Below are positions 10,852-41,519 of a DNA stretch of 64,000 nt, piece after piece. Both the position numbers and the translations under genes were made by a program. Position 1 is the stretch's first letter, and the number at the start of each line of letters is the position of its first letter. The notes beneath the pieces are model-generated. The model saw only the letters and a list, made by a program, of their open reading frames with translations. It was not told the origin of the DNA and ran no database searches. The stretch covers positions 124,001 to 188,000 of the IMG/VR virus record IMGVR_UViG_3300046171_000252; one strand, 5' to 3'.

Positions 10852-10859
10852 TATAAATA
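10852..10859 (+). promoter_or_regulatory. T4-type late promoter
   Basis: TATAAATA; further TAAATA cores at 11896, 13585, 14990 and TATAAATA at 19916. Confidence 0.75.
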
Positions 10860-10886: not shown

Positions 10887-11711
10887 ATGAACTCCAAAGA
10901 AATTAATAGTATTGCAGAAGCATATGCTAAAATGAATATCCGAGGAAATGATTCTGAGGAGCAAAAAAAGCGTCTTGAGAAGAAGCGTGGTATGAAACTG
11001 GACGATCATCCACAATTTAAAAAGGAAGCAAAATTAGATCCTGTTGGTCAGGAAGATGAAGATATTAATAATGATGGTAAGAAAGACAAAACAGATAAGT
11101 ATTTGAAGAATCGTCGTAAGGCAATCGGTAATGCAATTGCCAAAGAGCAAGTTCATCTAAATGATATTTCCAAGACTTACTTAGATCAGATTGCGACTAA
11201 TGAAGATGAAATTGATGAGGCACTGACTGGTGAGCGTCGTCAGGCAGCTGCAAAGAAAATGAATACCGCAAAGTCTGGTAGTGATCGTGCCACTGCATTT
11301 AATCTTGCCACTCGCAATGACATGGGTTCTTCTTACCAGAAGAAATCAACCGGTGGTAAGGGTAGTAGATTCCCTGGATATGGAGACAGAGGTGCTGGTA
11401 ATGCAGCAGCACGTCGTCAAGGTAAGGAACCTATGAGACAAGGACCTGAAAAGAAAGTTTCTGAAGAAACCTTGAAAGCAACCGGATTGTTCTCTGAAAA
11501 AGAGATTGCTGCTATAGAAGAAGCAATGAGTTCTTATGACAAAAATCGTAAGAGAGCAGCACAAAGAGCAGCAGACAGAAATGCTGCCAGAGCTGCTGGT
11601 AAGACTGGTGTAGTTCCTGGTGTAGGTTATGTAACTCCTAATAAGGAGAGAGAAACTTATACTGATGAGAAGGGCACCGAACGCCATAAGTCAGGAGCAA
11701 AAATGTCATGA
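10887..11711 (+). CDS. basic modular protein, putative internal head protein
   Basis: K/R/G-rich modules between acidic IDEA/VSEE/IEEA linkers; DxNNDG Ca-loop-like motif. Confidence 0.65.
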   Translation: MNSKEINSIAEAYAKMNIRGNDSEEQKKRLEKKRGMKLDDHPQFKKEAKLDPVGQEDEDINNDGKKDKTDKYLKNRRKAIGNAIAKEQVHLNDISKTYLDQIATNEDEIDEALTGERRQAAAKKMNTAKSGSDRATAFNLATRNDMGSSYQKKSTGGKGSRFPGYGDRGAGNAAARRQGKEPMRQGPEKKVSEETLKATGLFSEKEIAAIEEAMSSYDKNRKRAAQRAADRNAARAAGKTGVVPGVGYVTPNKERETYTDEKGTERHKSGAKMS

Positions 11712-11902
11712 TGAAGTCCTATCGGAATTTCTCTGAGGACATTGAGCAGCGTCGTCAGGCAATGAAGCAAAGGTCTAGTCAGCAACTACAAAAATTTAAA
11801 GCAAGAACTGCTGGTGCTCAACAAGAAAGACAGGCAGATACTGCTGATCGCGAAAACCTAAAAAAAGAAATCAAAAAAGAATTGCAACAAGACTCTAAAT
11901 AA
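11708..11902 (+). CDS. small coiled-coil protein with capsid-targeting-like N-terminus
   Basis: MKSYRNFSEDIE start. Confidence 0.6.
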   Translation: MMKSYRNFSEDIEQRRQAMKQRSSQQLQKFKARTAGAQQERQADTADRENLKKEIKKELQQDSK

Positions 11903-11919
11903 TTTAAAATTTTTTTGAT

Positions 11920-13440
11920 ATGTCTAAAAATATTACTATTCCGGGATATCTTGATGGTCCTTTGGGAGTTATTCTAGAGGCGATTGATAGCACTCGTGGT
12001 GTGGAAACTTCTCCTATTCCAATGAGTGTTAATCAAAGCGATGTTGATGAAAACCCTGACACTACCAAAACAGTTCTTTTTAAGGCAAAGATTCATGTAA
12101 ATCCGAGTAGAAGAACTGCTATTAGAGATGAGATTGTTGAGTATTTAAATGGTGTTTTGGATAAGGGCAATTTTAGTGATTTTGTAGAAGTAAGAAGTGG
12201 TACACCAACAAAACCTGACTCTGAGCAATTTGATGTTGTAGTCAAATATTCTGGCAAAAAACCACAAGTAATTAGAATACTAGTTAAACCAACTAATGCT
12301 GGTGGTTCTGGCGGTGGTGCTGCTAAAACTAAAATACAAGAAGTTGGTCAAGCATTATTCACTGCCATAAGATATCTTAAGAATAAAGACCTTGAGTGTC
12401 ATCCCGATGATATTTCAAACTGTTTGACGACTGCTGATTATGAGGCAGGTATGGAGTATGTGGATTGTAATAAAGAAGTCAAAATAGATGAAATAATGGG
12501 ACTTGAGCAGCAATGGAAAGATGCATTTATTTTAGGTGCTAATAAAATTCATAAGGAAGTTGGTGAAAGTGGATGGGAATTTTTGAGGGGAGATAGAATA
12601 GTTGATGATGGAGCACTTAAGAAAGCTTTCACTAGAGTAAAGAAAAATAGTCCGGCTGCACCAGATAATGAAGATAAATGGAATCCCTCTGACATATGGA
12701 TGATAAAGAAAAGTGAAAAGAATGCCATAGTATCAAAACTTGCAGAAGAAAATACGATAGATTGCTTAAATGAATATATTGCTTCAAAGTTTAAAGATAA
12801 AGAATTTATTGGATTATCTTTGAAGAAACTTGGTTCAAGTGCTAGATGGACTACGATGAATCCACCTAATACAAAACAACTTGATAAAGCAAAAAAGGTC
12901 AGATTTATTAGATCTAAAACTTTGCAGGAACTGACAGCATTCTCTGCCATGGATGTATATTTTGTTTTTGCACCATCAGGAAGTAAGACTAAGGATAGTT
13001 TTCAGGCAAGAAATTTTGCAGGAACTAATAGGGGAGATTGGAAGTTGGAAATTAAAGGGGAATTTGCTGCTCAGGGAAAAATTCAGGGGCAGGTAATGAG
13101 AAATCTTTTGACTGCTGCTGGTTTTTCTAAACCTGTTCCTAATGAACCATCTTTTGATGATTGCAAACCAGGATCTAATAAGGTGCAGGCAATTAATAAA
13201 GAAATTTACGATATAATGAATGGGTTAAGTCCTAAACCAAAAGGATGGAATGCTAAAACTGCACAAGCAGAAATTCGCACAAAGGATGCTTCATGGAGGT
13301 ATAGTAAGTTGGCAGGACTAAGACTTTTGGAATGGTTGATGAGTCTCCCTCAATCGGATGCAAATCGTGCTACGAAGGAGATGTATCTTTATGCATCTTC
13401 TCAAACTGATAAATCATCTGTTCATTATAAAATTTATTAG
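11920..13440 (+). CDS. putative PD-(D/E)XK-family nuclease
   Basis: TKIQE...DKWNPSDIW...IGLSLKK; TAAATA at 11896. Confidence 0.55.
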   Translation: MSKNITIPGYLDGPLGVILEAIDSTRGVETSPIPMSVNQSDVDENPDTTKTVLFKAKIHVNPSRRTAIRDEIVEYLNGVLDKGNFSDFVEVRSGTPTKPDSEQFDVVVKYSGKKPQVIRILVKPTNAGGSGGGAAKTKIQEVGQALFTAIRYLKNKDLECHPDDISNCLTTADYEAGMEYVDCNKEVKIDEIMGLEQQWKDAFILGANKIHKEVGESGWEFLRGDRIVDDGALKKAFTRVKKNSPAAPDNEDKWNPSDIWMIKKSEKNAIVSKLAEENTIDCLNEYIASKFKDKEFIGLSLKKLGSSARWTTMNPPNTKQLDKAKKVRFIRSKTLQELTAFSAMDVYFVFAPSGSKTKDSFQARNFAGTNRGDWKLEIKGEFAAQGKIQGQVMRNLLTAAGFSKPVPNEPSFDDCKPGSNKVQAINKEIYDIMNGLSPKPKGWNAKTAQAEIRTKDASWRYSKLAGLRLLEWLMSLPQSDANRATKEMYLYASSQTDKSSVHYKIY

Positions 13441-13441
13441 T

Positions 13442-13666
13442 ATGAAACCTGAAATAAAAGAACTAGTAAAATCCTTCAAATCAAAGAAGAAAAATGAGCG
13501 GGAAAGATATAATGATTTTCTTTATCATTGCTTTATGGCATATCATGATAAAGTAAAATCAAAATCGCCAGATAAGGTTAAGAATAAATATATTATTATG
13601 AGGGATAGTATGCTTAAATACCTCATAGCACATGAACAAGAAGTAATAGAACAATTAAGTAAATGA
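13442..13666 (+). CDS. hypothetical protein
   Basis: ORF filling the gap and coupled to the next gene. Confidence 0.55.
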   Translation: MKPEIKELVKSFKSKKKNERERYNDFLYHCFMAYHDKVKSKSPDKVKNKYIIMRDSMLKYLIAHEQEVIEQLSK

Positions 13667-15012
13667 AGTCTTTCTTTCAATTTCTGCGTGAGAGTACTGC
13701 TGTTCAACAAGCCACCCGTCTTGGATTAAAGACTGATGGTCATGGTGGATGGTATGATAATAAGGGAGAGTTTGTTGCAAAGACAGAAAAGGGAACACTA
13801 AAATTTTTTAATAAGCGTCAGAGAGTAGGAAAGCAAGATCCGCCACAAACTGATAAAGAAAAGAATTTATCTGCAACATCATCGGCACCTGCTGCCGCAC
13901 CAGAGGAACCCACACAGGCAAAAGCAGCACCGGAACAAGAACCACAAAAAGATGCCAACACTCCTGTAGTATTAGAACCACCTGAAGTTGAGAAGACAAA
14001 AGGAACTCTCACAATTGCCTTTGGTAGATTTAATCCTCCTACTACCGGACATGAAAAACTTTTGGATACAGTTTCCAAGTCATCCGATGATGGTGATTAT
14101 GTTATTGTTCCATCGCGTAGTCAAGACCCCAAAAAGAATCCATTAGATACTGATACTAAAGTCTCTATCATGAGACAGATGTTCCCTCAACACAGTGAGA
14201 GAATTGTTAATGACCCTCAGAACAGAACCATCTTTGATGTCTTGAAGAAGGCACATATGGATGGGTATGCCAATGTAAGAATTGTTGGTGGTGCAGATCG
14301 CCAGAAAGAATTTGACAAGTTGGTTAATAATTATAATGGTAAGATGTATCAGTTTGATAATGTAGAGGTTCGTTCTGCCGGTGATCGTGATCCGGACTCT
14401 GATGATGTAGAAGGAATGTCTGCATCAAAGCAAAGAAAGGCAGCAGTAGAAAATAATTTTGATGCATTCTATAAAGGTATTCCCTCCTCAATGTCTAAGA
14501 AGGCAGCAAAGGAAATGTTTAATAATATTCGTCTTGCGATGAATGTTTCTGAAGGATGGAACATGTGGGAAATCTCTCCTATATTTGATTGGAAGAATCT
14601 TCGTGAAAATTATATCAAAAAGAATATATTCAACCTGGGTGAAATTGTTGAAAATTTAAATCATGGACTGGTTGGTAGAATTATTCGTAGAGGCACTAAT
14701 TATCTAATCTGTGTCACAGAGGATAACATTATGTTTAAGTCCTGGATTAAGGATGTTATGGAATCTAAGAAAGAAATGCCTAATGTTGCACCCAAAGATA
14801 GAGCAGCAATTAATGCTCGTGCGAAGAATGTTTTTAAGAAAGATTTAAAAGGAACTGTGGTTGGCATAAACGAACAAAAGAATACTGAGGTGTCTGGAGT
14901 TCCTGGTGATCAACGACTTATTGGAACTGATGCACACTTTAAATATGTAAAGTCTTTGGTTCCTGGAAGTGACTGGGGAAAACAATTCATAAATAAGTAT
15001 AGAAAAAAGTAA
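13663..15012 (+). CDS. HIGH-class cytidylyltransferase-like nucleotidyltransferase
   Basis: FGRFNPPTTGHEKL, KNPL, VGGADR, GMSASK. Confidence 0.85.
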   Translation: MKSFFQFLRESTAVQQATRLGLKTDGHGGWYDNKGEFVAKTEKGTLKFFNKRQRVGKQDPPQTDKEKNLSATSSAPAAAPEEPTQAKAAPEQEPQKDANTPVVLEPPEVEKTKGTLTIAFGRFNPPTTGHEKLLDTVSKSSDDGDYVIVPSRSQDPKKNPLDTDTKVSIMRQMFPQHSERIVNDPQNRTIFDVLKKAHMDGYANVRIVGGADRQKEFDKLVNNYNGKMYQFDNVEVRSAGDRDPDSDDVEGMSASKQRKAAVENNFDAFYKGIPSSMSKKAAKEMFNNIRLAMNVSEGWNMWEISPIFDWKNLRENYIKKNIFNLGEIVENLNHGLVGRIIRRGTNYLICVTEDNIMFKSWIKDVMESKKEMPNVAPKDRAAINARAKNVFKKDLKGTVVGINEQKNTEVSGVPGDQRLIGTDAHFKYVKSLVPGSDWGKQFINKYRKK

Positions 15013-15030
15013 CTATTTGTTTGTTTCCAA

Positions 15031-16257
15031 ATGAGTAACACGATATCTGAAGAACCAAATACACAACAACCAGGTGGTGCTGTTGATAAAGTAAGGAAGG
15101 CTGCGAGGCAACTTGCTTATGATGTTCGCTACAAAGTAAAGGGACAATTTAAGGATGGCCAGAAATCTGATGCCGCATCCTTGAAGCGTGCTTACATGCA
15201 GCAACTGGGTAAGTCTCCTGCTCCTGGTCCTGTCAAAGTAATGGCAAAAAAGATGCTTATTGGAGAAGCATATGATTTAGTTGATGTATCTGATACTGTC
15301 AATGAATCTGTTGTCAATGCACTTCTGAAAGTCTTTGCCAAGAAGACTCAGTTGGAAGATGCAGATGGAAATGTCGCATATGAGGTGACTGACATCGTTC
15401 AGGAGGAGATGAAGGATACGAAGTATAAAATTAGAGTTACTGATAAATCAACCGGTAAGACTTATGTCAGAATGGCAGACCGTGAAAAGATTAGTCAGTT
15501 GAGAGCAGACCCTAGAATCTCTTCTGTTGAGATGACCGGATACGGTGATTCATATGACAAACCTGTCGGTAAAGGAAAGGGTGAAGAAGAAAAGAAGGAG
15601 ACCGCAAAGGAAGAATTCATCCATGAGGTAAATGTAGAGGATGATAATCCTGATGCAAATACCAAGAAGATTGATGTAATGAAAGGTAAGAATAAAATTA
15701 TCATCAATCCAACTCAGTCTGAGGAGATGAAACCCGGAGAGGATACATCTGCAGAAAAGACCAAAGAGAGTTCTGCCGATAAGAGAATCAGAATGGTTAA
15801 GAGAAAGATTCTCCAGAGCAAGATGCAAGCAGTTCGTCAGGGTGCCGGTGCAGATATTGTTGCTCATACTGAATTAGAGGGTGAAGAAATTTCTGAGAAA
15901 GCAGGAAGCGAGTGTCCTCCCGAGTCTTCTTCCAAAAAAGAAAAAGAAGATACTGATGATTACAGAAGTATGCCTGCAAAGGTCAATATGGTTAGAAACA
16001 AATTGAGAGCAATGGGTCTCAAGATGTCGTATGAACCAGAAGGTGATATGGTTGAAGCAACTGAAGATTCATTGAAGGATCGCCGCATGGAGCGTGGTGG
16101 TGTTGGTGGCAACATTCGTTATGACAAAGCACCTAAACCTACCAACACTGCTGGTAAAAAGAAACCCTATGATGGTATGTCTGCAGTTGAAAAAGTAAAG
16201 GCAAGTATCCGTGCCAAGTACGGACAGGGTGCCATTATTGATACTAAGAAAAAGTAA
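15031..16257 (+). CDS. modular acidic/basic protein, putative internal head protein
   Basis: repeated (I/V)xE linkers; SYEPEGDMVE and HTELEGEEISE. Confidence 0.65.
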   Translation: MSNTISEEPNTQQPGGAVDKVRKAARQLAYDVRYKVKGQFKDGQKSDAASLKRAYMQQLGKSPAPGPVKVMAKKMLIGEAYDLVDVSDTVNESVVNALLKVFAKKTQLEDADGNVAYEVTDIVQEEMKDTKYKIRVTDKSTGKTYVRMADREKISQLRADPRISSVEMTGYGDSYDKPVGKGKGEEEKKETAKEEFIHEVNVEDDNPDANTKKIDVMKGKNKIIINPTQSEEMKPGEDTSAEKTKESSADKRIRMVKRKILQSKMQAVRQGAGADIVAHTELEGEEISEKAGSECPPESSSKKEKEDTDDYRSMPAKVNMVRNKLRAMGLKMSYEPEGDMVEATEDSLKDRRMERGGVGGNIRYDKAPKPTNTAGKKKPYDGMSAVEKVKASIRAKYGQGAIIDTKKK

Positions 16258-16457
16258 TGCCTGCAGTATCACAAAAGCAACAGAAGTTCTTTGGAATAGT
16301 TCGTGCCATCCAAAAAGGAGAAATGGCACCGACGACTCCTGAGACTGCAAAGGCAGCTGCCGATATGAAGAAGAAAGATGTGAAGGACTTTGCATCTACT
16401 AAACATAAAGGTCTTCCTGAGAAAAAATCTCTCAAAGAGTTTTTGGAGAATATATAG
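16257..16457 (+). CDS. small basic protein (DUF3008-like)
   Basis: MPAVSQKQQKF...DFASTKHKGLPEKK. Confidence 0.7.
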   Translation: MPAVSQKQQKFFGIVRAIQKGEMAPTTPETAKAAADMKKKDVKDFASTKHKGLPEKKSLKEFLENI

Positions 16458-16478
16458 TATTAGTAATTGAGATTTACC

Positions 16479-16679
16479 ATGCTTGCATTCCTATTACCAT
16501 TAGCATCCAAAATCATTAAAGATGCAGTATCTAAAATTCCAGAAAATGAAGAACTGGGTGAGAAAATGGTTGAGATCTGTCTTGTTATTCTTGCTAAGGC
16601 AGTTAAGTTGACCAAAACTGATATGGATGATCAACTTCTTGAAGTCGTAACCAAATCAATTAACGCACGTAAAGAGTAG
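16479..16679 (+). CDS. conserved cyanophage hypothetical protein
   Basis: amphipathic helix, TKTDMDDQL. Confidence 0.65.
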   Translation: MLAFLLPLASKIIKDAVSKIPENEELGEKMVEICLVILAKAVKLTKTDMDDQLLEVVTKSINARKE

Positions 16680-16682: not shown

Positions 16683-18170
16683 ATGAACCAGAAACACATT
16701 AAGGAAGAGGGTCTGCGTGATTGGTTTGGTAAATCTAAATCAAAAGGTGGCAAAAAAGGATGGGTCAATGTCGTGACAGGAGATTCCTGTGCAAGTGACA
16801 AACCCGGTGAAGGTATTCCTAAATGTGTTTCTTCTTCTAAAAGGGCAAGTATGTCCAAGAAAGAAAGAGTTGCTGCTCAGGCAGCAAAGAGAAGAGAAGA
16901 TCCTGGTCAACAAAAGAAGTCTGGAGCATCTAAACCCACTATGGTAAAAACTGACCGTAAAGTAAGAAAAGAGGCAATGGAAGTTAATGGCGCACTTGAT
17001 GAAAATGTTTCATCTGGAAAATCACGTCTGGCTAAAATGGGTAGGGTTTCCGGAAAACCTACTGGTGCCATTACTAATACAGAAAAATCGGCAGAATTAA
17101 AAAAACAAAAAGACACAGAAAAGTCAAAGGATAAAGCAGTTGCAAATAAAGTTGATGTATCAGGAATGAGTCCTTTTGATGCAGCCAGGGTAAAGAAGAG
17201 AGCAGAATTTAAAGCAGAAAAGGAAAGATTGAGAGCACAGAAAAAAATGAGAAGAGAAGAGACTGAAGTACTTGATGAAGCAAAAGATAAGAAAGGTAAA
17301 GGCAGTGGATCTAAAGATGCCTGTTATCATAAGGTGAAGTCTCGTTATTCTGTATGGCCTTCTGCTTATGCATCTGGAGCACTTGTAAAATGTCGTAAGG
17401 TTGGTGCTGCCAACTGGGGTAATAAGAGTGAAGAGACTGAATTTGATTCTATCTCCTTCCAACAATTTCAAGAGAAGTGTTGGAAAGGTTATGAGAAGAA
17501 AGGTATGAAAAAAATGTTTGGTAAGAAATATCCAAACTGTGTTAAGAAGGAGGGATATGCACCTGGTGATGTGGATCAGAAAGTCGGTGCTGTCACTGCT
17601 ATTCCTAAGAGCGAACAGGATGCTGCCAAAGCAAGAATACTTGCAAAGACAAAGGCAAAAATGAAGAAAGAGGAAGTTGAAGAAATTGGTGAGGGTAAGT
17701 ATTCTAGTTCAGTCAGAGCCACCTATGGCGGAAAGACAGAAACTTTCCCTGTAGAGATTTATAGAAAAAAGTCAAAAAAAGCAGAGGCAAAAAAAGTAGA
17801 GGTAAAAGAAGGTGATGGCGATCCTTGCTGGGATACTCATAAACAAGTTGGCATGAAGAAGAAAGGTGGCAAGATGGTGCCTAACTGTGTGCCAAAAAAC
17901 GAGGAGGTAGAGACTCAGAATGAAGGAGCAGCATGGACAAAAAAATCCGGTAAGTCAGAATCCGGAGGACTCAATGAAAAAGGACGTAAGTCTTATGAAA
18001 GAGAAAATCCTGGTAGTGATCTAAAAGCACCATCTAAAAAGAAAGGCAACAAACGTAGAGCATCATTCTGTGCTAGAATGAAAGGTATGAAAAAGAAACT
18101 AACCTCTGCTAAAACTGCAAGAGATCCTGATAGCAGAATTAATAAGTCTCTTAGAGCTTGGAATTGCTGA
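16683..18170 (+). CDS. Lys-rich polyprotein-like protein with about 8 modules
   Basis: modules separated by Glu-rich linkers; two CW...GMKK..GK..PNCV repeats. Confidence 0.75.
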   Translation: MNQKHIKEEGLRDWFGKSKSKGGKKGWVNVVTGDSCASDKPGEGIPKCVSSSKRASMSKKERVAAQAAKRREDPGQQKKSGASKPTMVKTDRKVRKEAMEVNGALDENVSSGKSRLAKMGRVSGKPTGAITNTEKSAELKKQKDTEKSKDKAVANKVDVSGMSPFDAARVKKRAEFKAEKERLRAQKKMRREETEVLDEAKDKKGKGSGSKDACYHKVKSRYSVWPSAYASGALVKCRKVGAANWGNKSEETEFDSISFQQFQEKCWKGYEKKGMKKMFGKKYPNCVKKEGYAPGDVDQKVGAVTAIPKSEQDAAKARILAKTKAKMKKEEVEEIGEGKYSSSVRATYGGKTETFPVEIYRKKSKKAEAKKVEVKEGDGDPCWDTHKQVGMKKKGGKMVPNCVPKNEEVETQNEGAAWTKKSGKSESGGLNEKGRKSYERENPGSDLKAPSKKKGNKRRASFCARMKGMKKKLTSAKTARDPDSRINKSLRAWNC

Positions 18171-18539: not shown

Positions 18540-18702
18540 AATAAAACCTGAACATTTTTTGACAAAAGAAGAATGTCAGGAAATGATTGATAAAGCAATT
18601 GACAAACACAATAAAACTGCTACAATTATTAGTGCTATTCTTGGGGGAATTCTTTTAACCTTTTATTCTCATGGAGTTCTTTCGTTAGTTGGTCGTGTTT
18701 AA
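18520..18702 (+). CDS. small membrane protein
   Basis: C-terminal TM helix. Confidence 0.6.
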   Translation: MSHRITEIKPEHFLTKEECQEMIDKAIDKHNKTATIISAILGGILLTFYSHGVLSLVGRV

Positions 18703-19122: not shown

Positions 19123-19593
19123 ATGAAAGTAGGAATGATTGGGTTAGGTCGTACTGGTGAAGGTATGGCCCGCCGTATGATCGAAAAAGGAATTGAAGTT
19201 TGGGGTTATAGTAGTACTAACTATGAAAATGCCTGTGGACAATATGAAGCAGGGCACCTTAGTGGATGTGTAACTTCAATAGAGTATCTTGTCCGAGCAG
19301 TTAAAACTGATAATAAAAAATTTACTAGTGCTGGTAGAATTCCTGGCATCTTTCAGATTACACTCCCAGAGCAAAAGGCAGAAGACACACTTGATGAGTT
19401 GCTACCTTTACTTGAAGAGGGTGATATTATTATTGATCACAGCACCAGTGACATAAAAAAATGTCAGGAACTTGAAAAGTATTGTTCTAAGTTAGGTATA
19501 TCCTATATCTTCTCTGGTGTATATGGATCACCTGGTTCTATTAATGTTTGTTCAAAAATTTTTCAATCCTTATCACCAGGTAATATTAAATGA
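19123..19593 (+). CDS. NAD(P)-binding domain of 6-phosphogluconate dehydrogenase family (N-terminal domain only)
   Basis: MKVGMIGLGRTGEGMARRM, GDIIIDHS; catalytic C-terminal domain absent. Confidence 0.75.
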   Translation: MKVGMIGLGRTGEGMARRMIEKGIEVWGYSSTNYENACGQYEAGHLSGCVTSIEYLVRAVKTDNKKFTSAGRIPGIFQITLPEQKAEDTLDELLPLLEEGDIIIDHSTSDIKKCQELEKYCSKLGISYIFSGVYGSPGSINVCSKIFQSLSPGNIK

Positions 19594-23298: not shown

Positions 23299-25595
23299 CC
23301 AATGGAATCAATGTAAAAAAGCGCAACGGAAGAGGGAAGGAACCACTTCTTCTTGAGAAGATGCATAGAATGGTTGATGAGGCATGTACCGACCTTGCAG
23401 GAGTCTCTGCATCGCAGGTAGAGATGCAATCTGGTATTCAGTTCTATGATGGTATTACAACTGCAGAAATTCAAGAGATTTTGATTCGCTCTGCTTCAGA
23501 CTTGATCGACTTAGACCATCCTAATTATCAGTTTGTCGCTGCTCGTCTCTTATTGTTTTCTATCCGCAAGCAATTGTATGGACGTAGGCATGAAATTCCA
23601 AAGGTAAAGGACCATATATCAAGTTGTGTAGAAAAGGGTGTATATGATCCAGAACTTTTAACTTTATATTCAGATGAGGAGTTTGATAAACTTCAGTCGT
23701 TTATCGACCATGATCGTGATTATTTGTTTACATTTGCCGGTCTTCGTCAGGTTGCGGATAAATACCTAGTGCAGGATAGAAGCAGCGGTGTTTTATATGA
23801 AACTCCACAGTTCATGTATATTTTGATTGCTGCTACAATTTTTTCAAAATATCCAAAAGAAACCCGTCTGGATTACGTTAAAAAATATTATGATGCAATC
23901 TCCAAACACAGACTCAACATCCCCACGCCAATCATGGCAGGAGTTAGAACACCTCTTAGACAGTATGCCAGCTGTGTTCTTGTTGATGTTGATGACACCC
24001 TCGATAGTATCTTTACTAGCGATATGGCTATTGGGAAATATGTTGCTCAACGTGCAGGCATCGGTATCAACGCAGGCAGAATCCGTGGCATCAACAGTAA
24101 GATCCGAGGTGGAGAAGTACAACACACAGGTGTTGTCCCGTTCCTTAAAAAGTTTGAATCAACTGTACGATGTTGCACTCAGAATGGGATTCGTGGTGGT
24201 TCCGCAACAGTCCACTTCCCAATCTGGCACATCGAAATCGAAGACATCCTAGTTCTTAAGAACAATAAGGGTACAGAAGACAACCGAGTGAGGAAACTTG
24301 ACTACTCAATCCAAATTTCAAAACTTTTCTACGAACGTTTCATTACGAATGGAGAGATTAGCTTATTCTCACCGAATGACGTACCAGGTCTCTATGATGC
24401 TTTTGGTACTGACGCATTTGACGATTGCTATGTGGACTATGAATCAGATCAGTCTGTTCCAAGAAAGACTGTCAAGGCACAGGATCTCTTTCTAGACCTT
24501 TTAAAAGAAAGGGCAGAGACTGGTCGTCTTTACATTATGAATATTGACCACTGTAACTCTCATTCTTCTTTTATTGACAAAGTTGAGATGAGCAATCTAT
24601 GTCAAGAAATTACTCTACCTACGAAACCTTTACAACATATTGATGATGAAGATGGGGAAATTGCTTTGTGCATCCTTAGTGCTATTAACATTGGTAAAAT
24701 TAGGGACCTTGAAGATCTTGATGTTCTTTGTGATCTTGCTGTTAGGAGTCTTGATGAACTCATTGACTTTCAAGGATACCCCGTCAGAGCAGCAGAGATT
24801 GCCACTAAGGCACGTCGTTCGTTAGGAATCGGTTATATTGGTCTGGCACATTATCTTGCCAAACATGGAGTCAAATACGACCAACCAGATTCTTGGAAAC
24901 TGGTTCATGATTTAACTGAGGCATTCCAATACTATTTGATTCAGGCAACTGTCAACGTTGCAAAAGAAAAGGGTGCATGTGAATACAGTCATCGCACCAA
25001 GTACGGGAATGGAATTCTTCCGATTGATACATATAAACATGATGTAGATGAAATTGTGCCGAATGAGCTTCAGTACGATTGGGAGAGTCTTAGAACTCAG
25101 GTTTTGGAATACGGGGTACGGAACTCAACATTGTCCGCACAAATGCCTTCGGAGAGCAGTTCCGTTGTGTCAAACGCAACAAATGGAATTGAACCACCTA
25201 GAGGATACTTGTCCGTTAAGAAATCGAAGAAAGGTCCTTTGAAGCAAATAGTTCCACAATATGGAACCCTTAAAAATAATTATACGTTGCTTTGGGATAT
25301 GCCTGGGAATACTGGGTATATTAATATTGTTGCAGTTATGCAGAAATTCTTCGATCAAGCAATTTCTGGAAACTGGTCCTATAATCCAGAGCATTATGAA
25401 AATTCTGAAGTTCCTGTTAGTGTAATGGCACAGGATCTTTTAACTACATATAAGTACGGTTGGAAGACCTCTTATTACCAAAATACATACGATAATAAAA
25501 ACGATGAAGTAGAGGAATCTACGGAGTCTCTTGATAGTTTAATTTCTCAATTAGAAAACGCGGAGGAGGAAGACTGTGAGTCTTGTACAATTTAA
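23295..25595 (+). CDS. nrdA: class Ia ribonucleotide reductase alpha subunit
   Basis: ATP cone, SCVL, SNLCQEI, C-terminal CESC. Confidence 0.97.
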   Translation: MTNGINVKKRNGRGKEPLLLEKMHRMVDEACTDLAGVSASQVEMQSGIQFYDGITTAEIQEILIRSASDLIDLDHPNYQFVAARLLLFSIRKQLYGRRHEIPKVKDHISSCVEKGVYDPELLTLYSDEEFDKLQSFIDHDRDYLFTFAGLRQVADKYLVQDRSSGVLYETPQFMYILIAATIFSKYPKETRLDYVKKYYDAISKHRLNIPTPIMAGVRTPLRQYASCVLVDVDDTLDSIFTSDMAIGKYVAQRAGIGINAGRIRGINSKIRGGEVQHTGVVPFLKKFESTVRCCTQNGIRGGSATVHFPIWHIEIEDILVLKNNKGTEDNRVRKLDYSIQISKLFYERFITNGEISLFSPNDVPGLYDAFGTDAFDDCYVDYESDQSVPRKTVKAQDLFLDLLKERAETGRLYIMNIDHCNSHSSFIDKVEMSNLCQEITLPTKPLQHIDDEDGEIALCILSAINIGKIRDLEDLDVLCDLAVRSLDELIDFQGYPVRAAEIATKARRSLGIGYIGLAHYLAKHGVKYDQPDSWKLVHDLTEAFQYYLIQATVNVAKEKGACEYSHRTKYGNGILPIDTYKHDVDEIVPNELQYDWESLRTQVLEYGVRNSTLSAQMPSESSSVVSNATNGIEPPRGYLSVKKSKKGPLKQIVPQYGTLKNNYTLLWDMPGNTGYINIVAVMQKFFDQAISGNWSYNPEHYENSEVPVSVMAQDLLTTYKYGWKTSYYQNTYDNKNDEVEESTESLDSLISQLENAEEEDCESCTI

Positions 25596-26760
25596 GATAA
25601 ACAAAGAAAAAAAACCAGTGGTTGAATCCATGACTGTTTTTAACTCTGAGGAAGTTGACACTAAAAAGCAACCAATGTTTTTTGGTAAACCACTGGGTAT
25701 TCAGAGATACGATTCTTATAAGTATCCAATTTTTGACAAACTCACAACGCAGCAGTTGGGATATTTCTGGAGACCAGAGGAAGTTTCTCTTCAGAAAGAT
25801 CGTGCTGATTATCAAACACTACGTCCAGAACAAAAGCATATTTTTACTTCTAACTTGAAGTATCAGATTATGCTTGATTCGGTTCAGGGTCGTGGTCCTG
25901 GTATGGCATTTATCCCATATTGCTCTCTTCCTGAATTAGAGGCATGTATGGAGGTCTGGGGGTTCATGGAGATGATCCATAGTCGTTCATATACTCATAT
26001 CATCAAGAACATTTATCCTGACCCCTCTGATGTATTTGATCACATTCTGAATGATGATCGCATTGTTGAACGTGCCATGACGGTTACTCAGGCATATAAT
26101 GAGTTTATTAATGCAGCACATCATTATGATAATTCTAATGATTGGCAACATGCATTGGAGCAAGTTCCTTATGCATTAGAATCCAGATATGAACTCAAGC
26201 GCAAACTCTTTAGAGCAGTTGCGAATGTTAATATCCTTGAAGGTATTCGCTTTTACGTATCATTTGCTTGTAGTTTTGCTTTTGGTGAACTCAAACTTAT
26301 GGAAGGAAGTGCAAAGATCATCTCACTGATTGCTAGAGATGAGAATCAGCATCTTGCTATTACTCAGAATATTCTGAAGAAGTGGAGAGAAGGTGATGAT
26401 CCTGATATGAAAAAAATCTTTAAAGAAGAAGAACAATGGTTGATTGGTGCATTTGAAAACTGTGTTAATCAAGAAAAACTTTGGGCAGAATATCTGTTCA
26501 AGAATGGTTCAATGATTGGTTTGAATGATAAATTGCTTCAGCAATATGTAGAATGGATTGCCAATCGTAGAATGAAAGCAATTGGACTAAAACCAATCTA
26601 TGACATACCCGCAAAGAATAACCCACTCCCCTGGACGGAACATTGGATTTCGTCGAAGGGTCTTCAAGTTGCTCCTCAAGAAACTGAGGTTGAGTCTTAC
26701 ATCGTCGGAGGAATCAAACAAGATGTCACCGAAAACACATTCGCAGGATTTAGTCTCTGA
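25576..26760 (+). CDS. nrdB: ribonucleotide reductase beta subunit
   Basis: FWRPEE, EMIHSRSY, EGIRFY, RDENQH, APQETEVESY. Confidence 0.97.
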   Translation: MSLVQFKINKEKKPVVESMTVFNSEEVDTKKQPMFFGKPLGIQRYDSYKYPIFDKLTTQQLGYFWRPEEVSLQKDRADYQTLRPEQKHIFTSNLKYQIMLDSVQGRGPGMAFIPYCSLPELEACMEVWGFMEMIHSRSYTHIIKNIYPDPSDVFDHILNDDRIVERAMTVTQAYNEFINAAHHYDNSNDWQHALEQVPYALESRYELKRKLFRAVANVNILEGIRFYVSFACSFAFGELKLMEGSAKIISLIARDENQHLAITQNILKKWREGDDPDMKKIFKEEEQWLIGAFENCVNQEKLWAEYLFKNGSMIGLNDKLLQQYVEWIANRRMKAIGLKPIYDIPAKNNPLPWTEHWISSKGLQVAPQETEVESYIVGGIKQDVTENTFAGFSL

Positions 26761-31897: not shown

Positions 31898-32698
31898 ATG
31901 ATTCCAGAAATCCAGTTAGGTAATATTGATATTGGAGTTAATCAAGTTAGTAATTTGATTATTAATGATACACCTGACTGGTTAAAAACTCCGCCTGCAG
32001 CAATGCCAATATACCCACCCGTGACTACACAGGTGGGTGTTCCTATTGTTAATATACCTGGATGTGTTGAGTCTCACAGAGATAGTAGTGAGAATCAAAC
32101 ACTCAAAGAAGAAGATAGAGATGGCGTCCAAGTATTCTGTGATGCAGGAACACCTAGCTATAGTCCAATAGATTATGATCCACGCAGACTAGAGATAACA
32201 ACAACATCTCCGCCACCCCCACCATACAAAGCACCTGATACAAAACCACCAGAGACACCCAAATCTCCTACACCACCACCTCCACCTGCGAAGGCAGAGT
32301 GTCCGAGTAGAGCACAAGAATTAAAAAACCCTGTAGGAAAGATCCTAGAGGGTAATAAAAAGATTACTAGGTATGAGACAGTCGGAAAAGAATGTCTTCC
32401 TGTATTTGAAAATTTAAATATACCGGATCAGATTGTCCAGAACATACCATCAGCAGGTGCAGTAACTGTTACCGCATCTATCGCTGTGGTGGCAACGACC
32501 TCGGCACTGCTTGCAAAACCTCTTGCTGATCTTTTGTTAAAAGTGGTGAAACCTGTGACGAAGAAAGTGGTGAAGAAGATTGCTGCCTTACGGGGTAAGA
32601 AACCCCCGGTACTGTCTGAGTCTGAGAGGAAGGCGGAGCAACGTGATCGGAACCGTGCGATAAAGGTCCTACGTTCGGCACTGAAACCGAAGGGATAG
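31898..32698 (+). CDS. Pro-rich membrane-associated protein
   Basis: PGCV, poly-Pro linker, C-terminal TM and basic tail. Confidence 0.75.
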   Translation: MIPEIQLGNIDIGVNQVSNLIINDTPDWLKTPPAAMPIYPPVTTQVGVPIVNIPGCVESHRDSSENQTLKEEDRDGVQVFCDAGTPSYSPIDYDPRRLEITTTSPPPPPYKAPDTKPPETPKSPTPPPPPAKAECPSRAQELKNPVGKILEGNKKITRYETVGKECLPVFENLNIPDQIVQNIPSAGAVTVTASIAVVATTSALLAKPLADLLLKVVKPVTKKVVKKIAALRGKKPPVLSESERKAEQRDRNRAIKVLRSALKPKG

Positions 32699-33758
32699 TA
32701 TGACGATGTTGCTTGACGGTATTAACATTTTGTACTACGACATCGGCACATATTTTAAAATAAGGACTTCTGGGATGGAAACTGATTCCTCTCTGCATTA
32801 ATTCTCCACAATTCTTAAGTCTCGCAATCTCAAAATCTAATCTCTTATTGGCAACCAATTGTTGTTGCATTTGGATCTGAGTATCTGCTGCTTGTTTACA
32901 ACGTTCTTGTAGTCCACCATCAAGTGGGAAAGAAAGTGTTGCAGATAAACCAAGACTGGTACTGTAATTTCTACTATCACCAGTTCTCACTGGTTTTTGC
33001 CAGAGTTCACGGCCTGGATTATCGGGGACACCATCACCCTGCATTTCCATAACAATGATAGTCATGTCTGCACCATCTTCATAGGCACGAACAGTTTCTC
33101 CAGCAGTATTCGTATATGTTCTATTATCATAGTGTGGTTCCCACGGCCAATTCTTTACTACCTTTTGAGTCTCTACTAACTGACCATTAAAATCTCTATT
33201 GTCATATTGAGGTTCCATGTAGTGTGTTTCAAATGGATCCTTTTCATTACGAGCATGAGTAATGAATGGTGTGATGTTAGCAGTCGGACCTTGACAAGCA
33301 ATACCCCCACCATATTGGTTAGTGATATATGGTCCTTGTAAGACCTGAATAGCTTGGTTCGTAACTGAGCCTGAACTATTAGCTATTGGGTTTGCTGTCG
33401 CACTTACACCCCCGACATCTGCCGCCAGTGTGGCAGGGACAGTCGCAAGTTGAGTTAGACATAGTACTATTGGGTAAAGATACTTGTTGTGTCGGTTACG
33501 CTGGTAACTTCTGTTGTTCTTTGAATCACAGTTTGATTTGTCACTCCTGGTCCCATGTAGGTCTGAGTGAACTGAAATGCTGCTCCTGGTTCTGCGATTG
33601 TGAAATTCTGTCCATTTAAATCGAGACCAGAGTTGGCACTTGTTACTTGCCCCTCTGTTCCTCCTAATGGATTCACTATCACTGAATTTGTTGTTGGGTT
33701 CGGACTCAGGGATTGTCCCCCGTTGGTCACGTTTGTTCCCGATACTGAATATTGCCAT
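32478..33758 (-). CDS. secreted protein, true start unclear (signal-like segment begins near 33491)
   Basis: KYLYPIVLCL..ATLA|ADVGGVSATANP..; no in-frame ATG at the signal peptide. Confidence 0.7.
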   Translation of the reverse strand: MAIFSIGNKRDQRGTIPESEPNNKFSDSESIRRNRGASNKCQLWSRFKWTEFHNRRTRSSISVHSDLHGTRSDKSNCDSKNNRSYQRNRHNKYLYPIVLCLTQLATVPATLAADVGGVSATANPIANSSGSVTNQAIQVLQGPYITNQYGGGIACQGPTANITPFITHARNEKDPFETHYMEPQYDNRDFNGQLVETQKVVKNWPWEPHYDNRTYTNTAGETVRAYEDGADMTIIVMEMQGDGVPDNPGRELWQKPVRTGDSRNYSTSLGLSATLSFPLDGGLQERCKQAADTQIQMQQQLVANKRLDFEIARLKNCGELMQRGISFHPRSPYFKICADVVVQNVNTVKQHRHTIPSVSVPNVGPLSHGSDHVAPPSSQTQTVPGVSYPVRQQSSSPLSSSQVSPLLTKDQQEVLQAVPRSLPPQR

Positions 33759-33937
33759 CCTGTTGCATAATCTATAGAGTTAATCGTCTCAGTCACTTTA
33801 CTTGTCGTTTCCGTGTGACTCGTCATACTTCCCTGTGTGAAATTTGGGACCACGGGGACCGCCAGGGCAGCGGCAGGAATAAGACTTACTCCCACCGCAG
33901 ACATCACAATATATATGATTGTCTTTCCAGAAGTCAT
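33467..33937 (-). CDS. secreted Thr/Ser-rich beta protein
   Basis: signal peptide ..AALA|VPVVPNF; GGAGG RBS. Confidence 0.75.
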   Translation of the reverse strand: MTSGKTIIYIVMSAVGVSLIPAAALAVPVVPNFTQGSMTSHTETTSKVTETINSIDYATGWQYSVSGTNVTNGGQSLSPNPTTNSVIVNPLGGTEGQVTSANSGLDLNGQNFTIAEPGAAFQFTQTYMGPGVTNQTVIQRTTEVTSVTDTTSIFTQ

Positions 33938-33957
33938 GTTTTCTGACCTCCATTTAT

Positions 33958-34452
33958 TTAGTGTAGAATTGAGAGCTCACTTACGAATTGGCCAGTAGCA
34001 TTCGTACCAGCTCCACCAGCTGTCAAAGTAATTGCACCAGCAGTAGAGAGAGTACCTGCAAGAGAACCAGCAGCTCCTGCAGTTGTAGATGTAACATTAC
34101 CAAAGTTTGCTACATCACCAACAGTGACTGCACTAGTTGGAATCGCATCAGCCTGTGTGTAAGACTGAGAGAAACTAAAAGCACTACCAGGATTATCTTG
34201 AGTGGCAGCAATTGTACCAGGAGCATAAACTCCACTACTAATTGCACCAGTAGAAATTGTATTAACTGTTGTTCCGTCAGTAGTATCTACACCGCTGCCT
34301 GAAATTGAAAATGTACTGCCAAGTCTTGTGACATTAGAAGCAGCAGCATCAACGGTTAACTGAACACTAGAAGATATTTTATGAGTAAGAGCACCTGCAT
34401 TTGCTGCTGGTGCGGTCATCAATAACATTATGAAAGGTAGAAACCGTTTCAT
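33958..34452 (-). CDS. secreted Ser/Thr/Gly/Ala-rich beta protein
   Basis: MKRFLPFIMLLMTAPAANA signal; minus-strand TAAATA at 34485-34490. Confidence 0.8.
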   Translation of the reverse strand: MKRFLPFIMLLMTAPAANAGALTHKISSSVQLTVDAAASNVTRLGSTFSISGSGVDTTDGTTVNTISTGAISSGVYAPGTIAATQDNPGSAFSFSQSYTQADAIPTSAVTVGDVANFGNVTSTTAGAAGSLAGTLSTAGAITLTAGGAGTNATGQFVSELSILH

Positions 34453-34540
34453 ACTTTTTACCAAAAATGGTGTATAGGTATTTTTATTTAGCTTGACCTT
34501 TTTTTAATTTGGTGTTATAGTACCTAAAGATACAACAAAT

Positions 34541-34614
<74 letters not shown>

Positions 34615-34633
34615 TTGTCCTTTTCTATTTCTT

Positions 34634-34837
34634 ATGGGCAAATATGATTTTGGTGGGCAACCACCAATAGCAGTCAACATCCTCAGACTCATTAGTGAGT
34701 TAGAAGGTTCTTCCCAAATGCTTAAATATATGGGATTTGAAGAAGATATGAATGCGATCAATGAAATGAAGAAGAGATACTATAAACTCTACTTCAAGAC
34801 CAATAAGGAAGAAAAGGCAAAAAACAATCCTCTGTAG
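34634..34837 (+). CDS. hypothetical protein; stop codon lies inside tRNA-Asn
   Basis: ORF track. Confidence 0.6.
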   Translation: MGKYDFGGQPPIAVNILRLISELEGSSQMLKYMGFEEDMNAINEMKKRYYKLYFKTNKEEKAKNNPL

Positions 34838-34899
34838 CTCAGCGGTAGAGCCGACGACTGTTAATCGTCTGGTCGCAGGTTCGAATCCTGCCGGGGGAG
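34828..34899 (+). tRNA. tRNA-Asn(GTT)
   Basis: TCCTCTG/CGGGGGA, GACGA-CTGTTAA-TCGTC, GTTCGAA. Confidence 0.93.
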
Positions 34900-34979
34900 T
34901 TGACAGGATATTCATCTTGTCGTATACTATGCTTGTCCGTGTGAAGGAAGTGTTTGAGGGATTTTTCTCTCACCACTCT

Positions 34980-35050
34980 GCGGGTTTAGTTTAGAGGTAA
35001 AACTAAAGGTTTCCAACCTTTCGTCAGGAGTTCGATTCTCCTAACCCGCT
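34980..35050 (+). tRNA. tRNA-Gly(TCC)
   Basis: GCGGGTT/AACCCGC, AAAGG-TTTCCAA-CCTTT. Confidence 0.92.
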
Positions 35051-35198
35051 TTCGGATTCCCGTAATCCGAGCATAGTATAAATACTTAACCATTTGTCTT
35101 TCAGTAATTAAAGTAACAAATGGTGATATTAACACGGGACAGTCGAGTCCCTATTCATCTGCGGGTATCCATTCCGCAAGTAACTAAAGGTAAAACAA

Positions 35199-35568
35199 AT
35201 GTTTAAAACGACTATCGCTGCAGCTGCCGCTGCAATTGCTCTTGCTCCAGCTGCTGCCCTAGCCGGTCCCTACGTCAACGTAGAGACAAATGCAGGTTGG
35301 GTTGGCGACGATTATACTGCTGCCACGACAGATCTTCACGTAGGATTTGAAGGCGAAGTAGGTGCTGCTTCTTACTACGTCCAGGCTGGTCCTGCAATCG
35401 TCGCTGTTGACGGTGAAGAGACTGACACCCAGTTCTCTGGTAAAGGCAGGAGTTGGCGTCCCCGTTTCCGATGCTATCGGAGTATACGGTGAGCTCTCCT
35501 TCTTGACCGCAGAAGACGATGATGATTTCGGTGTTGGTGGTAAGTTGGGCGTCAAGTACAACTTCTGA
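35199..35568 (+). CDS. small outer-membrane beta-barrel protein (frameshift near 35443, probable sequencing indel)
   Basis: signal peptide, alternating beta strands, C-terminal KLGVKYNF. Confidence 0.75.
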
Positions 35569-35606
35569 TCTTCAATATAGACACATAAACATCTAGATGT
35601 TATACT

Positions 35607-35634
35607 GGGGGTGCGACGGCATCCCCTTTTTTTT
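35607..35634 (+). terminator. intrinsic terminator
   Basis: GGGGGTGC-GACG-GCATCCCC followed by a T-run. Confidence 0.8.
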
Positions 35635-35839
35635 ATGAAAAAATATTTATAACTTTCATAACGAATCCAGGAACGCTGACCTCCCTTCTGTTACTGGGAA
35701 TGATAGCACTGATAGGGACACTGCATAACCATGCTCACTATGCAATGACTATGGATGCAGATTCTTACGTTAGACAATGGTGTAGAGCATCAGCAGAAAA
35801 CAAAAAGACCTGCATTCGTTATGGTGGAGACATGGACTA

Positions 35840-35868
35840 TTGACAAAACTTTATCTTTCCTATATAAT
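35840..35868 (+). promoter_or_regulatory. sigma70-type promoter of the hli cluster
   Basis: TTGACA-17-TATAAT. Confidence 0.8.
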
Positions 35869-35895
35869 ATGTAAAGAAACATTACGGAGTGTATC

Positions 35896-36114
35896 GTGAC
35901 TGTAACAACCAATGATCGTGGACAACAGAATCTGTTTGCCAAAGAACCCCAGATGTACGTCTCTCAGACTGATGCAGAGCGTTACGGTTATGAGTCATAT
36001 GCAGAACGTGCAGAGAAATTGAATGGACGCACTGCTATGCTTGGATTTGTTGCTGCTGTCATCTCTTATGCTACTTCCGGTAGTGTATTTTTCTTTGGTG
36101 TCTTCGGATTCTGA
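35896..36114 (+). CDS. hli: high-light inducible protein
   Basis: AEKLNGRTAMLGF chlorophyll-binding motif. Confidence 0.9.
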   Translation: MTVTTNDRGQQNLFAKEPQMYVSQTDAERYGYESYAERAEKLNGRTAMLGFVAAVISYATSGSVFFFGVFGF

Positions 36115-40455: not shown

Positions 40456-41519
40456 TTAAAATTTATACTTATTCTCACAATAGACCCGACCTAATCAAAC
40501 CTCAATACGAAAGTCTTAAAAGACATATTAAAGATGACTTTGAATTTATCGTATTCAATAATGAACGGGCAGGATCTAATCCATTTAGTGGATACTCACC
40601 TGATAGAGTTCAGGAGATTTTTGATGTTTGTAATGAGATTGGTATAGAATGTATCAGAGTTGACCTAGACCCTCAGTATCAGTTCATTAATGGATACAAA
40701 CAATTTGAAGGTGATTCATTTACTGGTGATGGAAGTCAAGTTTGTGGGTATGCATTCACATGGGGATGGCAACATTACATCTCCAAGAATGATTGTATCT
40801 CTTTGATAATTGATTCTGATATGTTCTTCATCAAAGACATATCAATTGCAGAAATGATTGAAGGATACAACCTGTCTATCATTCCATCCTATAGATATAG
40901 TAGAAAATATAGTGATGGTGATCCTGGAGAGATTGCTTTGAAGTATCCTTGGAATGGTATTGTCATTGCTGATATTCCTAATCTTCCCAATCCTTCTGAA
41001 CTTAAATGGGATCTTGGAATATTCAACGGACAACCATGTGATGTTGGTGGAGGAGGACATAAGTATCTTTCTGATTATGAGAATGAATTAAAAATTAAAT
41101 ACATGGATCAGGTAAGCGTTCAAAGGGATGCTGACTCTGGGGATAAGCATAGTCCTCCTCCTGGATATATTGAAATGGGATTTAATGGATGCTCTCCAAT
41201 GCATGTCAATCTTGTAGAGAAAGAGTTTCACATTCTTGATTACCAACATTCCGATACTCAAACTTTTCCTCATCAAAAGGAAAGAGAGAACTACTGGCAG
41301 TATGTTTATGATTGCTTTACTTACATGGTTGACTATGGAAGTTATTATCAGTTTCCCAAACCAACATTTATTGACTTGATAAAATTTGAGGAAGATGATA
41401 GTATGGAGGATGCATTCGTTCTACATTATAAAAATGCAAGCAATGGAAATGCTTGGCAATCTGATGATTATAATGCATTGAAAACAAGATCACTCAATAG
41501 AGTTTTAGGTGTAAATTAA
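40452..41519 (+). CDS. putative GT-A glycosyltransferase
   Basis: IIDSDMF DxD motif, DVGG, LHY. Confidence 0.55.
   Translation: MIKIYTYSHNRPDLIKPQYESLKRHIKDDFEFIVFNNERAGSNPFSGYSPDRVQEIFDVCNEIGIECIRVDLDPQYQFINGYKQFEGDSFTGDGSQVCGYAFTWGWQHYISKNDCISLIIDSDMFFIKDISIAEMIEGYNLSIIPSYRYSRKYSDGDPGEIALKYPWNGIVIADIPNLPNPSELKWDLGIFNGQPCDVGGGGHKYLSDYENELKIKYMDQVSVQRDADSGDKHSPPPGYIEMGFNGCSPMHVNLVEKEFHILDYQHSDTQTFPHQKERENYWQYVYDCFTYMVDYGSYYQFPKPTFIDLIKFEEDDSMEDAFVLHYKNASNGNAWQSDDYNALKTRSLNRVLGVN

Follow-up and report, generated by a model that had tools for sequence, protein, structure and literature searches.

The internal proteins of bacteriophage T4 (IPI, IPII, IPIII and Alt) are small, highly basic, non-essential and hypervariable among relatives; they sit inside the head, are cut by gp21 after L/I-x-E, and are ejected together with the DNA. 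Cleavage by gp21 after L/I-x-E is documented (PMC9026906), and so is the N-terminal capsid-targeting sequence of these proteins, 10-19 amino acids (aa) long, in which positions 4 and 7 matter for targeting and positions 8 and 10 for processing (PMC9026906). The capsid-targeting sequence of T4 is MKTYQEFIAE (PMC8442874). Here we analyze a 495-aa open reading frame (ORF) in a 64,000-nucleotide (nt) stretch of viral DNA that we call the window, which is bases 124001-188000 of a 207.6-kb T4-like cyanomyovirus record (IMG/VR record IMGVR_UViG_3300046171_000252) whose DNA and proteins best match Synechococcus myoviruses such as S-SKS1. The product of this ORF is a member of the T4-GC119/DUF6321 family of cyanomyovirus virion proteins. 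It is a chain of small conserved modules, and it is probably diced into mini-proteins inside the capsid, because the linkers between its modules resemble the sites of the phage's own head-maturation protease.

Architecture of the protein

The ATG of the ORF lies 4 nt past the stop codon of the preceding ORF. The protein is very basic (isoelectric point, pI, 9.9; 95 Lys and 45 Gly; 123 Lys plus Arg versus 66 Asp plus Glu). The sole Pfam match of the whole protein is DUF6321 (PF19846) at the C-terminus, aa 423-493, with an E-value of 4.2e-22, above the cut-off; in PHROGs, separate parts of the protein match separate families of unknown function. Homologs are abundant: tblastn finds them in 494 phage records, including the annotated T4-GC119 genes SSM2_109 of S-SM2 and SSM1_115 of S-SM1 ("T4-LIKE GC: 119"), a word-indexed search gives at least 8000 matches, and an exhaustive search gives 7389 clusters (50% identity; proteins of 182-979 aa). 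An alignment of homologs of differing length has six invariant blocks with variable stretches between them. The parts of the protein are the following, in window coordinates; pLDDT is the predicted local distance difference test of an AlphaFold2 model.

16683..18170, plus strand: whole ORF, ATG start, 495 aa, 1488 nt; T4-GC119/DUF6321 family member
16683..16706, plus strand: putative short propeptide MNQKHIKE (aa 1-8), ending in I-K-E; pLDDT below 50
16707..16973, plus strand: module M1 (aa 9-97), basic, Cys 36/48; invariant block, in 86 phage records
16974..17003, plus strand: linker ending in L-D-E (aa 98-107); pLDDT below 50; homolog P0016 joins ..ALDE straight to AKDKK
17004..17279, plus strand: variable cassette (aa 108-199) that ends in EETEVLDE and combines a disordered stretch with two long helices; homologs have it or lack it as a whole
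17280..17474, plus strand: module M2 (aa 200-247, three helices, Cys 214/237) with a tail linker ending in FQQFQE; invariant block, in 365 phage records
17475..17552, plus strand: CW hairpin 1, CW1 (aa 265-290, block aa 265-288), Cys 266/286; beta-hairpin, pLDDT about 84
17553..17693, plus strand: module M4 (aa 291-329, GYAPGD.. and a helix) with linker EEVEEIGE; absent as a unit in homolog P0058
17694..17810, plus strand: variable segment with V-K-E at its end (aa 338-376), predicted disordered, pLDDT below 50; homologs lack it or have another stretch instead
17811..17924, plus strand: CW hairpin 2, CW2 (aa 377-405, block aa 380-405) with linker EEVETQNE; Cys 382/402
17925..18167, plus strand: module M6, which is DUF6321 (aa 415-495), Cys 463/495, net charge +17; in 545 phage records

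A first-pass annotation, made from the letters of the window, had described this ORF as a polyprotein-like string of about eight basic mini-domains joined by acidic linkers. All eight linker strings that it named are indeed there (a slash marks the proposed cut): IKE/E at aa 6-9, LDE/N at 105-108, EETEVLDE/A at 192-200, FQQFQE/K at 259-265, KKE/G at 288-291, EEVEEIGE/G at 330-338, VKE/G at 374-377, and EEVETQNE/G at 407-415. So are the Cys pairs that it assigned to five modules, which take up all ten cysteines of the protein. Its two paralogous CW modules (CW..PNCV, aa 266-287 and aa 382-403) are identical at 11 of 22 residues, and a single hidden Markov model (HMM) matches both. The count of mini-domains has to be amended. 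The string is modular, but it consists rather of six conserved modules and two variable segments, and among the eight fragments predicted from cutting at the linkers (10.7, 10.3, 7.2, 3.0, 5.1, 4.4, 4.2 and 9.0 kDa) two, aa 291-337 and aa 377-414, are mildly acidic with their linker tails included.

This pattern of modules and linkers is not due to chance: more than 7000 clusters (50% identity) keep the modules, and no Cys pair varies among the distinct module copies (167, 112, 93 and 159; the M1 pair is present in 167/167). The Glu residues on either side of M2, E199 and E264, are also invariant in the homolog alignment. Intragenic DNA repeats are only 13-27 nt long, and therefore there is no DNA-level evidence for a recent internal duplication of the gene.

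The AlphaFold2 model, built from a 129-sequence alignment, has small confident folds for the modules, and the helices at aa 134-199 of the variable cassette reach a pLDDT of 70-88. The regions with pLDDT below 50 are aa 1-7, 80-85, 90-135, 197-210, 249-261, 292-306, 329-379 and 407-414. Every proposed linker lies inside one of these low-confidence segments, and the linkers are thus predicted to be disordered.

Similarity to proteins of known structure was not found: a sequence search of the PDB with the 495-aa protein gave no match at E ≤ 10, and Foldseek of the AlphaFold2 model against the PDB gave nothing significant. Neither Pfam nor these two PDB searches showed homology to T4 IPI, IPII or IPIII. 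Pfam searches with single modules added nothing beyond a sub-threshold match of M2 to DUF5872 (E-value 0.04, 14.9 bits vs. a cut-off of 27.5), and a feature search of the ESM Atlas with M1 returned unnamed viral clusters only. A likeness of the CW hairpin to alpha-defensins (E-values 3.5-9 over 22-26 residues) is not significant, and we dismissed it as chance.

Modules as cassettes

The modules had been proposed to be exchangeable as cassettes, and comparing their order among relatives bears this out. Homologs differ in length by gain, loss, duplication and permutation of whole modules. In homolog P0016, the deletion spans exactly aa 108-199, between the two LDE sites; in homolog P0021, FQQFQE-K is fused directly onto CWDTH; other homologs have extra modules. 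SSM1_115 of S-SM1 has the same ORF length as the window ORF (1488 nt) and a different architecture. When the six module HMMs are run on 269 proteins, 34 architectures result, including permutations such as M1-CW-M2-M6, and the module boundaries follow the linkers.

Modules also occur as neighboring genes. DUF3008 is a separate 66-aa ORF in the window (16257-16457) and is fused within the S-RIM2 and S-SM1 proteins. A Cys-rich module has its own ORF beside gp23 in this genome (G000 106098-106388) and is an N-terminal fusion in S-SCSM1_29 and P-SSM3_75. As these comparisons of sequence have it, modules shuttle between the T4-GC119 gene and the genes around it.

The first-pass annotation had also called for a search for stand-alone module homologs, which we found for M1, M2, CW and M6, ending where the linkers lie. 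Foldseek against the AlphaFold DB gave the following matches to the window protein.

99-aa protein: aa 1-93, M1
65-aa protein: aa 196-250, M2
38-47-aa proteins: aa 367-409, CW
82-aa protein: aa 415-495, M6

The 99-aa protein, labeled DUF5872, matches aa 1-93 with an E-value of 0.077. DUF6321 stands alone as a gene of 81-101 aa in five phages that are not myoviruses (Pelagibacter phage Lederberg, podoviruses P-SCSP1b and S-CBP4, Methylophilales phage MEP401, and Planktothrix phage Pag-Yong1), with starts within a few residues of the M6 boundary. A search for an S77 protease, with the genome of the window phage as positive control, found it in 0/5 of them. Had the module boundaries in homologs departed from the linkers, the polyprotein idea would have been in trouble; since indels and stand-alone genes share the linker boundaries, this objection fails.

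Two side observations concern these small genes. The CW hairpin region shares 56% identity with a 47-aa cellular protein labeled "SSU ribosomal protein S31P" (AlphaFold DB clusters, E-value 0.03), which may be a mislabeled phage-derived mini-protein. In the podoviruses P-SCSP1b (11941-12359) and S-CBP4 (25364-25807), DUF6321 adjoins a gene for a second tiny, very basic protein (KGLYANIHAKRKR..), and in these T7-like cyanopodoviruses the gene pair sits in the structural module, beside capsid and tail-tube genes. The products of the pair may be unrecognized virion or internal proteins; the cryo-electron microscopy paper on P-SCSP1u contains no virion proteomics.

A hydrophobic-x-Glu motif at the junctions

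Among 120 close homologs, [IV]-x-E precedes M1 in 115/115 cases, minimal M-I-x-E starts included, and [LIVMF]-x-E precedes M2 in 107/107. For a more diverse set we took 151 representatives, counted unique contexts only, and used random positions as the reference, with these results for [LIVMF]-x-E.

Before M1: exact in 79/117; random positions 2.1%
Before M2: exact in 62/90, within -7..+3 in 86/90; random positions 2.1% and 15.6%
Before CW: exact in 71/125, within -7..+3 in 112/125; random positions 2.1% and 15.6%
Before M6: exact in 46/113, within -7..+3 in 94/113; random positions 2.1% and 15.6%

That is, the exact motif is present in 41-69% of contexts vs. 2%, and within a few residues in 83-96% vs. 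16%. In the 445 aligned junction contexts, P1 (the residue before the proposed cut) is Glu in 280 and Asp in 39, the latter mostly through one-residue shifts in the alignment; P3 is L, I, V, M or F in 281, P2 varies, and most P1′ residues are G, E, K, A or S. One M1 subtype starts with M-A-x-KSGD when it is N-terminal, and reads [hyd]-x-E/xxKSGD (hyd, hydrophobic) when it is internal. We argue from these sequences that the constraint acts on the junction itself and not on any one fold, because four module types share [hyd]-x-E, the linkers otherwise vary, and the natural start of this M1 subtype is the predicted cut.

The linkers as a whole contain 1444 motifs, against 1009 ± 28 after shuffling, and inside the modules the motif is rare, being almost solely one conserved L-N-E in M6. 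That L-N-E (aa 430-432, window 17970-17978) deserves a separate remark. The myovirus family keeps the Glu of its GGLNE context, and the five stand-alone DUF6321 genes, whose phages lack S77, all encode Ala or Lys there. It could be an extra cleavage site, or this could simply be lineage drift.

The first-pass annotation had likened the Glu linkers to prohead-protease sites. The conservation of [LIVMF]-x-E at junctions upholds this in general, while two of the eight linkers, KKE/G and TQNE/G, do not fit. One could then suppose that nothing is cut at all, and that this is an uncleaved beads-on-a-string virion protein whose acidic linkers are mere flexible spacers between modules that bind DNA or protein. 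Linkers that are Glu-rich, so that part of the motif matches is compositional, and two misfitting junctions are what such a protein could have. It is harder to see why spacers would give four unrelated module types the same preceding hydrophobic-x-Glu within variable linkers, with Glu and not Asp at P1, why the minimal M-I-x-E N-termini would be kept, and why natural N-termini would fall at the predicted cut. The N-terminus enters on both sides: the window protein has no canonical targeting sequence, but relatives bear T4-like ones, as described below. Detection by mass spectrometry fits an intact protein equally well. All in all, we find the uncleaved protein unlikely.

Protease and targeting sequences

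The phage has the protease that such junctions would need. The same genome carries gp20, gp21, gp22 and gp23. Its gp21 (G000 102603-103253) matches the S77 family PF03420 with an E-value of 6.9e-35, and the T4 gp21 structure 5JBL with an E-value of 6.8e-23, with the GHP and SRG motifs kept. Its gp23 has FLGE54/A55 aligned exactly to the T4 cleavage site E65/A66, a site that follows from the mature T4 chain being 65 residues shorter than its precursor.

Across the whole genome, a strict targeting pattern at ORF starts is found 2 times vs. 0.005 expected: in a cytidylyltransferase-like ORF at window 13663 (MKSFFQFLRE/S, 13663-13692) and in the ORF beside gp23 (MKDFNKFIEE/A, G000 106098-106127). 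A looser match, MKSYRNFSE, lies at window 11711-11737. Starts of this type are also borne by homologs of the cytidylyltransferase in P-SSM3 and S-SCSM1 and by SWTG_00074 of S-RIM2. Within the DUF6321 family, 26 of 104 unique N-termini of short proteins are of the MK.F..F type, followed by a module, an [hyd]-x-E junction, and M6; MKDFREFRELAE/A and MKSFNEFSE/S are examples. A protein with a targeting-type start, P0383, is encoded between gp16 and gp17, which is the T4-GC119 slot, and the T4-like contigs also have S77, gp22 and gp23. The first module of P0383 (KRGLYANIH..) and DUF6321 are two adjoining separate genes in podoviruses. Because T4-like targeting starts are present on three ORFs of this genome and on homologs elsewhere, these starts suggest that cyanomyoviruses have a T4-type cargo-loading system.

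Presence of homologs in virions

The T4-GC119 family and its presence in virions were already known. T4-GC119 is listed as a "structural protein," found in S-SM1 virions with 13 peptide counts, and is present in 15/16 cyanomyoviruses with gene lengths of 276-2985 nt, and is absent from S-PM2 (Sullivan et al. 2010, Suppl. Table 8). The homolog SSCSM1_29 of S-SCSM1 is annotated "virion protein," the label that the S-SCSM1 paper uses for proteins detected by mass spectrometry. The association of the window protein with the virion is thus read from its homologs in S-SM1 and S-SCSM1, by mass spectrometry. We found no earlier account of DUF6321, of capsid-targeting sequences in cyanophages, or of cyanophage internal head proteins in the literature, subscription journals being outside our coverage; with the same scope, we found no description of the modular polyprotein anatomy, of the junction motif, or of T4-like targeting sequences in cyanophages.

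The virion data bear on two more explanations. A non-structural, host-directed protein that binds the nucleoid or RNA could contaminate virion preparations, and a very basic, Lys-rich protein in which no structural fold is recognized could be of that kind. We regard this as very improbable: the family was detected independently in two CsCl-purified phages, the syntenic neighbors are also virion proteins, the gene context is late, and relatives have targeting sequences. The protein could otherwise be a scaffold or core-like factor, cut by gp21 like T4 gp22, gp67 and gp68, with most pieces expelled and the cutting serving to clear head space. It shares many gp21-type sites and acidic stretches with the phage's own gp22 (17 [LI]-x-E sites), T4 core proteins do yield several fragments, and many genomes carry the gene in a neighborhood of head and packaging genes. 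Expelled pieces are at odds, however, with peptides being present in mature virions of homologs. Conserved folds and invariant Cys pairs characterize the modules, which also stand alone in phages without S77, and neither the lack of the gene in S-PM2 nor the 276-2985 nt length range is like an essential scaffold. A scaffolding role is thus distinctly unlikely.

The proposed processing

The reading towards which we lean is that the protein is packaged into the prohead as a precursor, which gp21 then cleaves to yield basic mini-proteins. The precursor would consist of small, independently folding, mostly basic modules with invariant Cys pairs, joined by disordered acidic linkers that end in hydrophobic-x-Glu. 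Late in infection, it would be built into the prohead core. There gp21 (S77) would cut after E8, E107, E199, E264, E337 and/or E376, and near E414. The resulting fragments of about 3-11 kDa, most of them with pI 9.4-10.6, would remain with the packaged DNA, where they may neutralize the charge of the DNA and/or accompany the genome into the host. The roles of the fragments, as DNA-condensing proteins or injected effectors, are speculation.

Several facts weigh against this reading. The start of the window protein, MNQKHIKE/E, is not a canonical targeting sequence; it lacks the aromatics at positions 4 and 7 and retains only the I-x-E part of a T4-type start. The CW1/M4 junction, CVKKE/G, lacks a hydrophobic P3 in every homolog, and the CW2/M6 junction of the window protein, TQNE/G, is one residue off the consensus V-x-E/G register, I/T-Q-N-E/G before M6 being a trait of a subgroup that includes the window protein. 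The commonest P3 is Val, whereas T4 gp21 favors Leu or Ile. The enrichment of the motif in linkers over composition is only about 1.4-fold, and because the sequences are related, the junction counts are not independent. Syn9 has a T4-GC119 gene, yet its virions gave no peptides (Sullivan et al. 2010), and shotgun proteomics does not separate a precursor from its fragments. A complex prediction of gp21 with aa 170-300 gave a score of 0.00, which we list here and do not use as evidence.

A more ambitious version is possible but doubtful. The protein would be a combinatorial polyprotein of hypervariable, Cys-stapled cationic mini-proteins, diced in the capsid and co-injected as anti-defense or takeover effectors and/or DNA condensers. 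In phages without the protease the mini-proteins would be free-standing, and fusion plus a gp21 site would load many cargoes per targeting event.

Genomic context

The ORF follows a series of genes on the plus strand whose syntenic S-SCSM1 cluster, _89 to _93, is annotated as virion proteins throughout.

10852..10859, plus strand: T4 late-promoter-like motif TATAAATA, just upstream of the gene cluster
10887..11902, plus strand: two ORFs for basic proteins of 274 aa and 63 aa that start like propeptides (MNSKEINSIAE/A and MKSYRNFSE/D)
13663..15012, plus strand: cytidylyltransferase-like protein (T4-GC190), start MKSFFQFLRE/S; homologs in S-SM1 and S-SCSM1 virions
15031..16257, plus strand: 408-aa Lys/Glu-rich protein, starting MSNTISE/E; syntenic S-SCSM1_92 annotated virion protein
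16257..16457, plus strand: 66-aa DUF3008 protein; S-SCSM1_93 annotated virion protein

In the plus-strand run 10887-16679, the S-SCSM1 counterparts were all detected by mass spectrometry, and most genes start with a short stretch that ends in hydrophobic-x-Glu. Weaker late-promoter-like ATAAATA copies are at 13584 and 14989; the placement of these motifs is suggestive, with no statistical enrichment across the window. Scans for sigma-70 promoters and terminators were uninformative.

Downstream of the 495-aa ORF are petE and a gnd fragment. A strong sigma-70-like promoter (18599-18626: TTGACA, 16-nt spacer, TACAAT, TG extension) lies upstream of petE, and because of it the arrangement suggests a transcription-unit boundary directly after the 495-aa ORF. 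The 6-phosphogluconate-dehydrogenase-like ORF at 19123-19593 has 156 aa and the NAD-binding part only, gnd of S-SM1 being 1041 nt; the ORF in the window may be truncated or split. Farther away, 39412-58604 (about 19 kb) is a large glycan-biosynthesis island, with NAD-dependent epimerase/dehydratases, glycosyltransferases (GT2, GT11 and GT92-like), S-adenosylmethionine methyltransferases, and UDP-glucose/GDP-mannose dehydrogenase back-to-back. The GC content is 0.43-0.46 at 32000-36000 and 60000-62000, versus about 0.37-0.39 elsewhere in the window, and in 32000-36000 the GC skew is reversed and there are ORFs on the minus strand (32478-34464). Both regions may be acquired islands.

Comparison with known systems

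T4-like cyanophages are among the most abundant viruses of the ocean, and their T4-GC119 family, which occurs in thousands of metagenomic clusters, still goes by annotations such as hypothetical or structural. If the proposed processing is true, many orphan phage proteins that are small and basic (DUF6321, DUF3008, DUF5872-like, CW hairpins) would be explained by it, and a simple rule, a targeting sequence plus [LIVMF]-x-E junctions, would predict capsid cargo in marine phages.

Other viruses also make several products from one ORF in the form of polyproteins, and the adenovirus core precursors pVII and pX/Mu give rise to basic, DNA-associated peptides that are made in the capsid by the maturation protease. 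The comparison with pVII and pX/Mu is an analogy only, because the proteins, the proteases and the viruses are unrelated. In the giant phages phiKZ and SPN3US, a diverged S77 protease recognizes a short motif in many of the head and inner-body proteins that are packaged or ejected, and cleaves behind its Glu (PMC9026906); there, however, a propeptide comes off a large protein at a different motif, and the substrates are not chains of mini-domains. T4 gp22, gp67 and gp68 have numerous sites at which gp21 cleaves them, and end up as small peptides (PMC9026906), much as we propose here. They are scaffolds, however, acidic and for the most part helical, and most of their pieces leave the head; the pieces predicted here have conserved, basic folds with paired Cys, for which separate genes also exist.

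A further system close to this one is that of the T4 internal proteins. Family members and neighbors of the window ORF start in a nearly identical way, MK.[FY]..F[LIM].E. The differences are that there is no sequence or fold similarity, that the N-terminus of the window protein is non-canonical, and that in T4 one gene gives one product, cut once (Alt twice), while here one ORF strings together 6-8 modules, and nearly all junctions have a putative site. If the processing is as we propose, the T4 internal-protein paradigm would widen from one gene and one cargo to a modular cargo library, and, if confirmed, this would be a new variant of the T4 internal-protein system.

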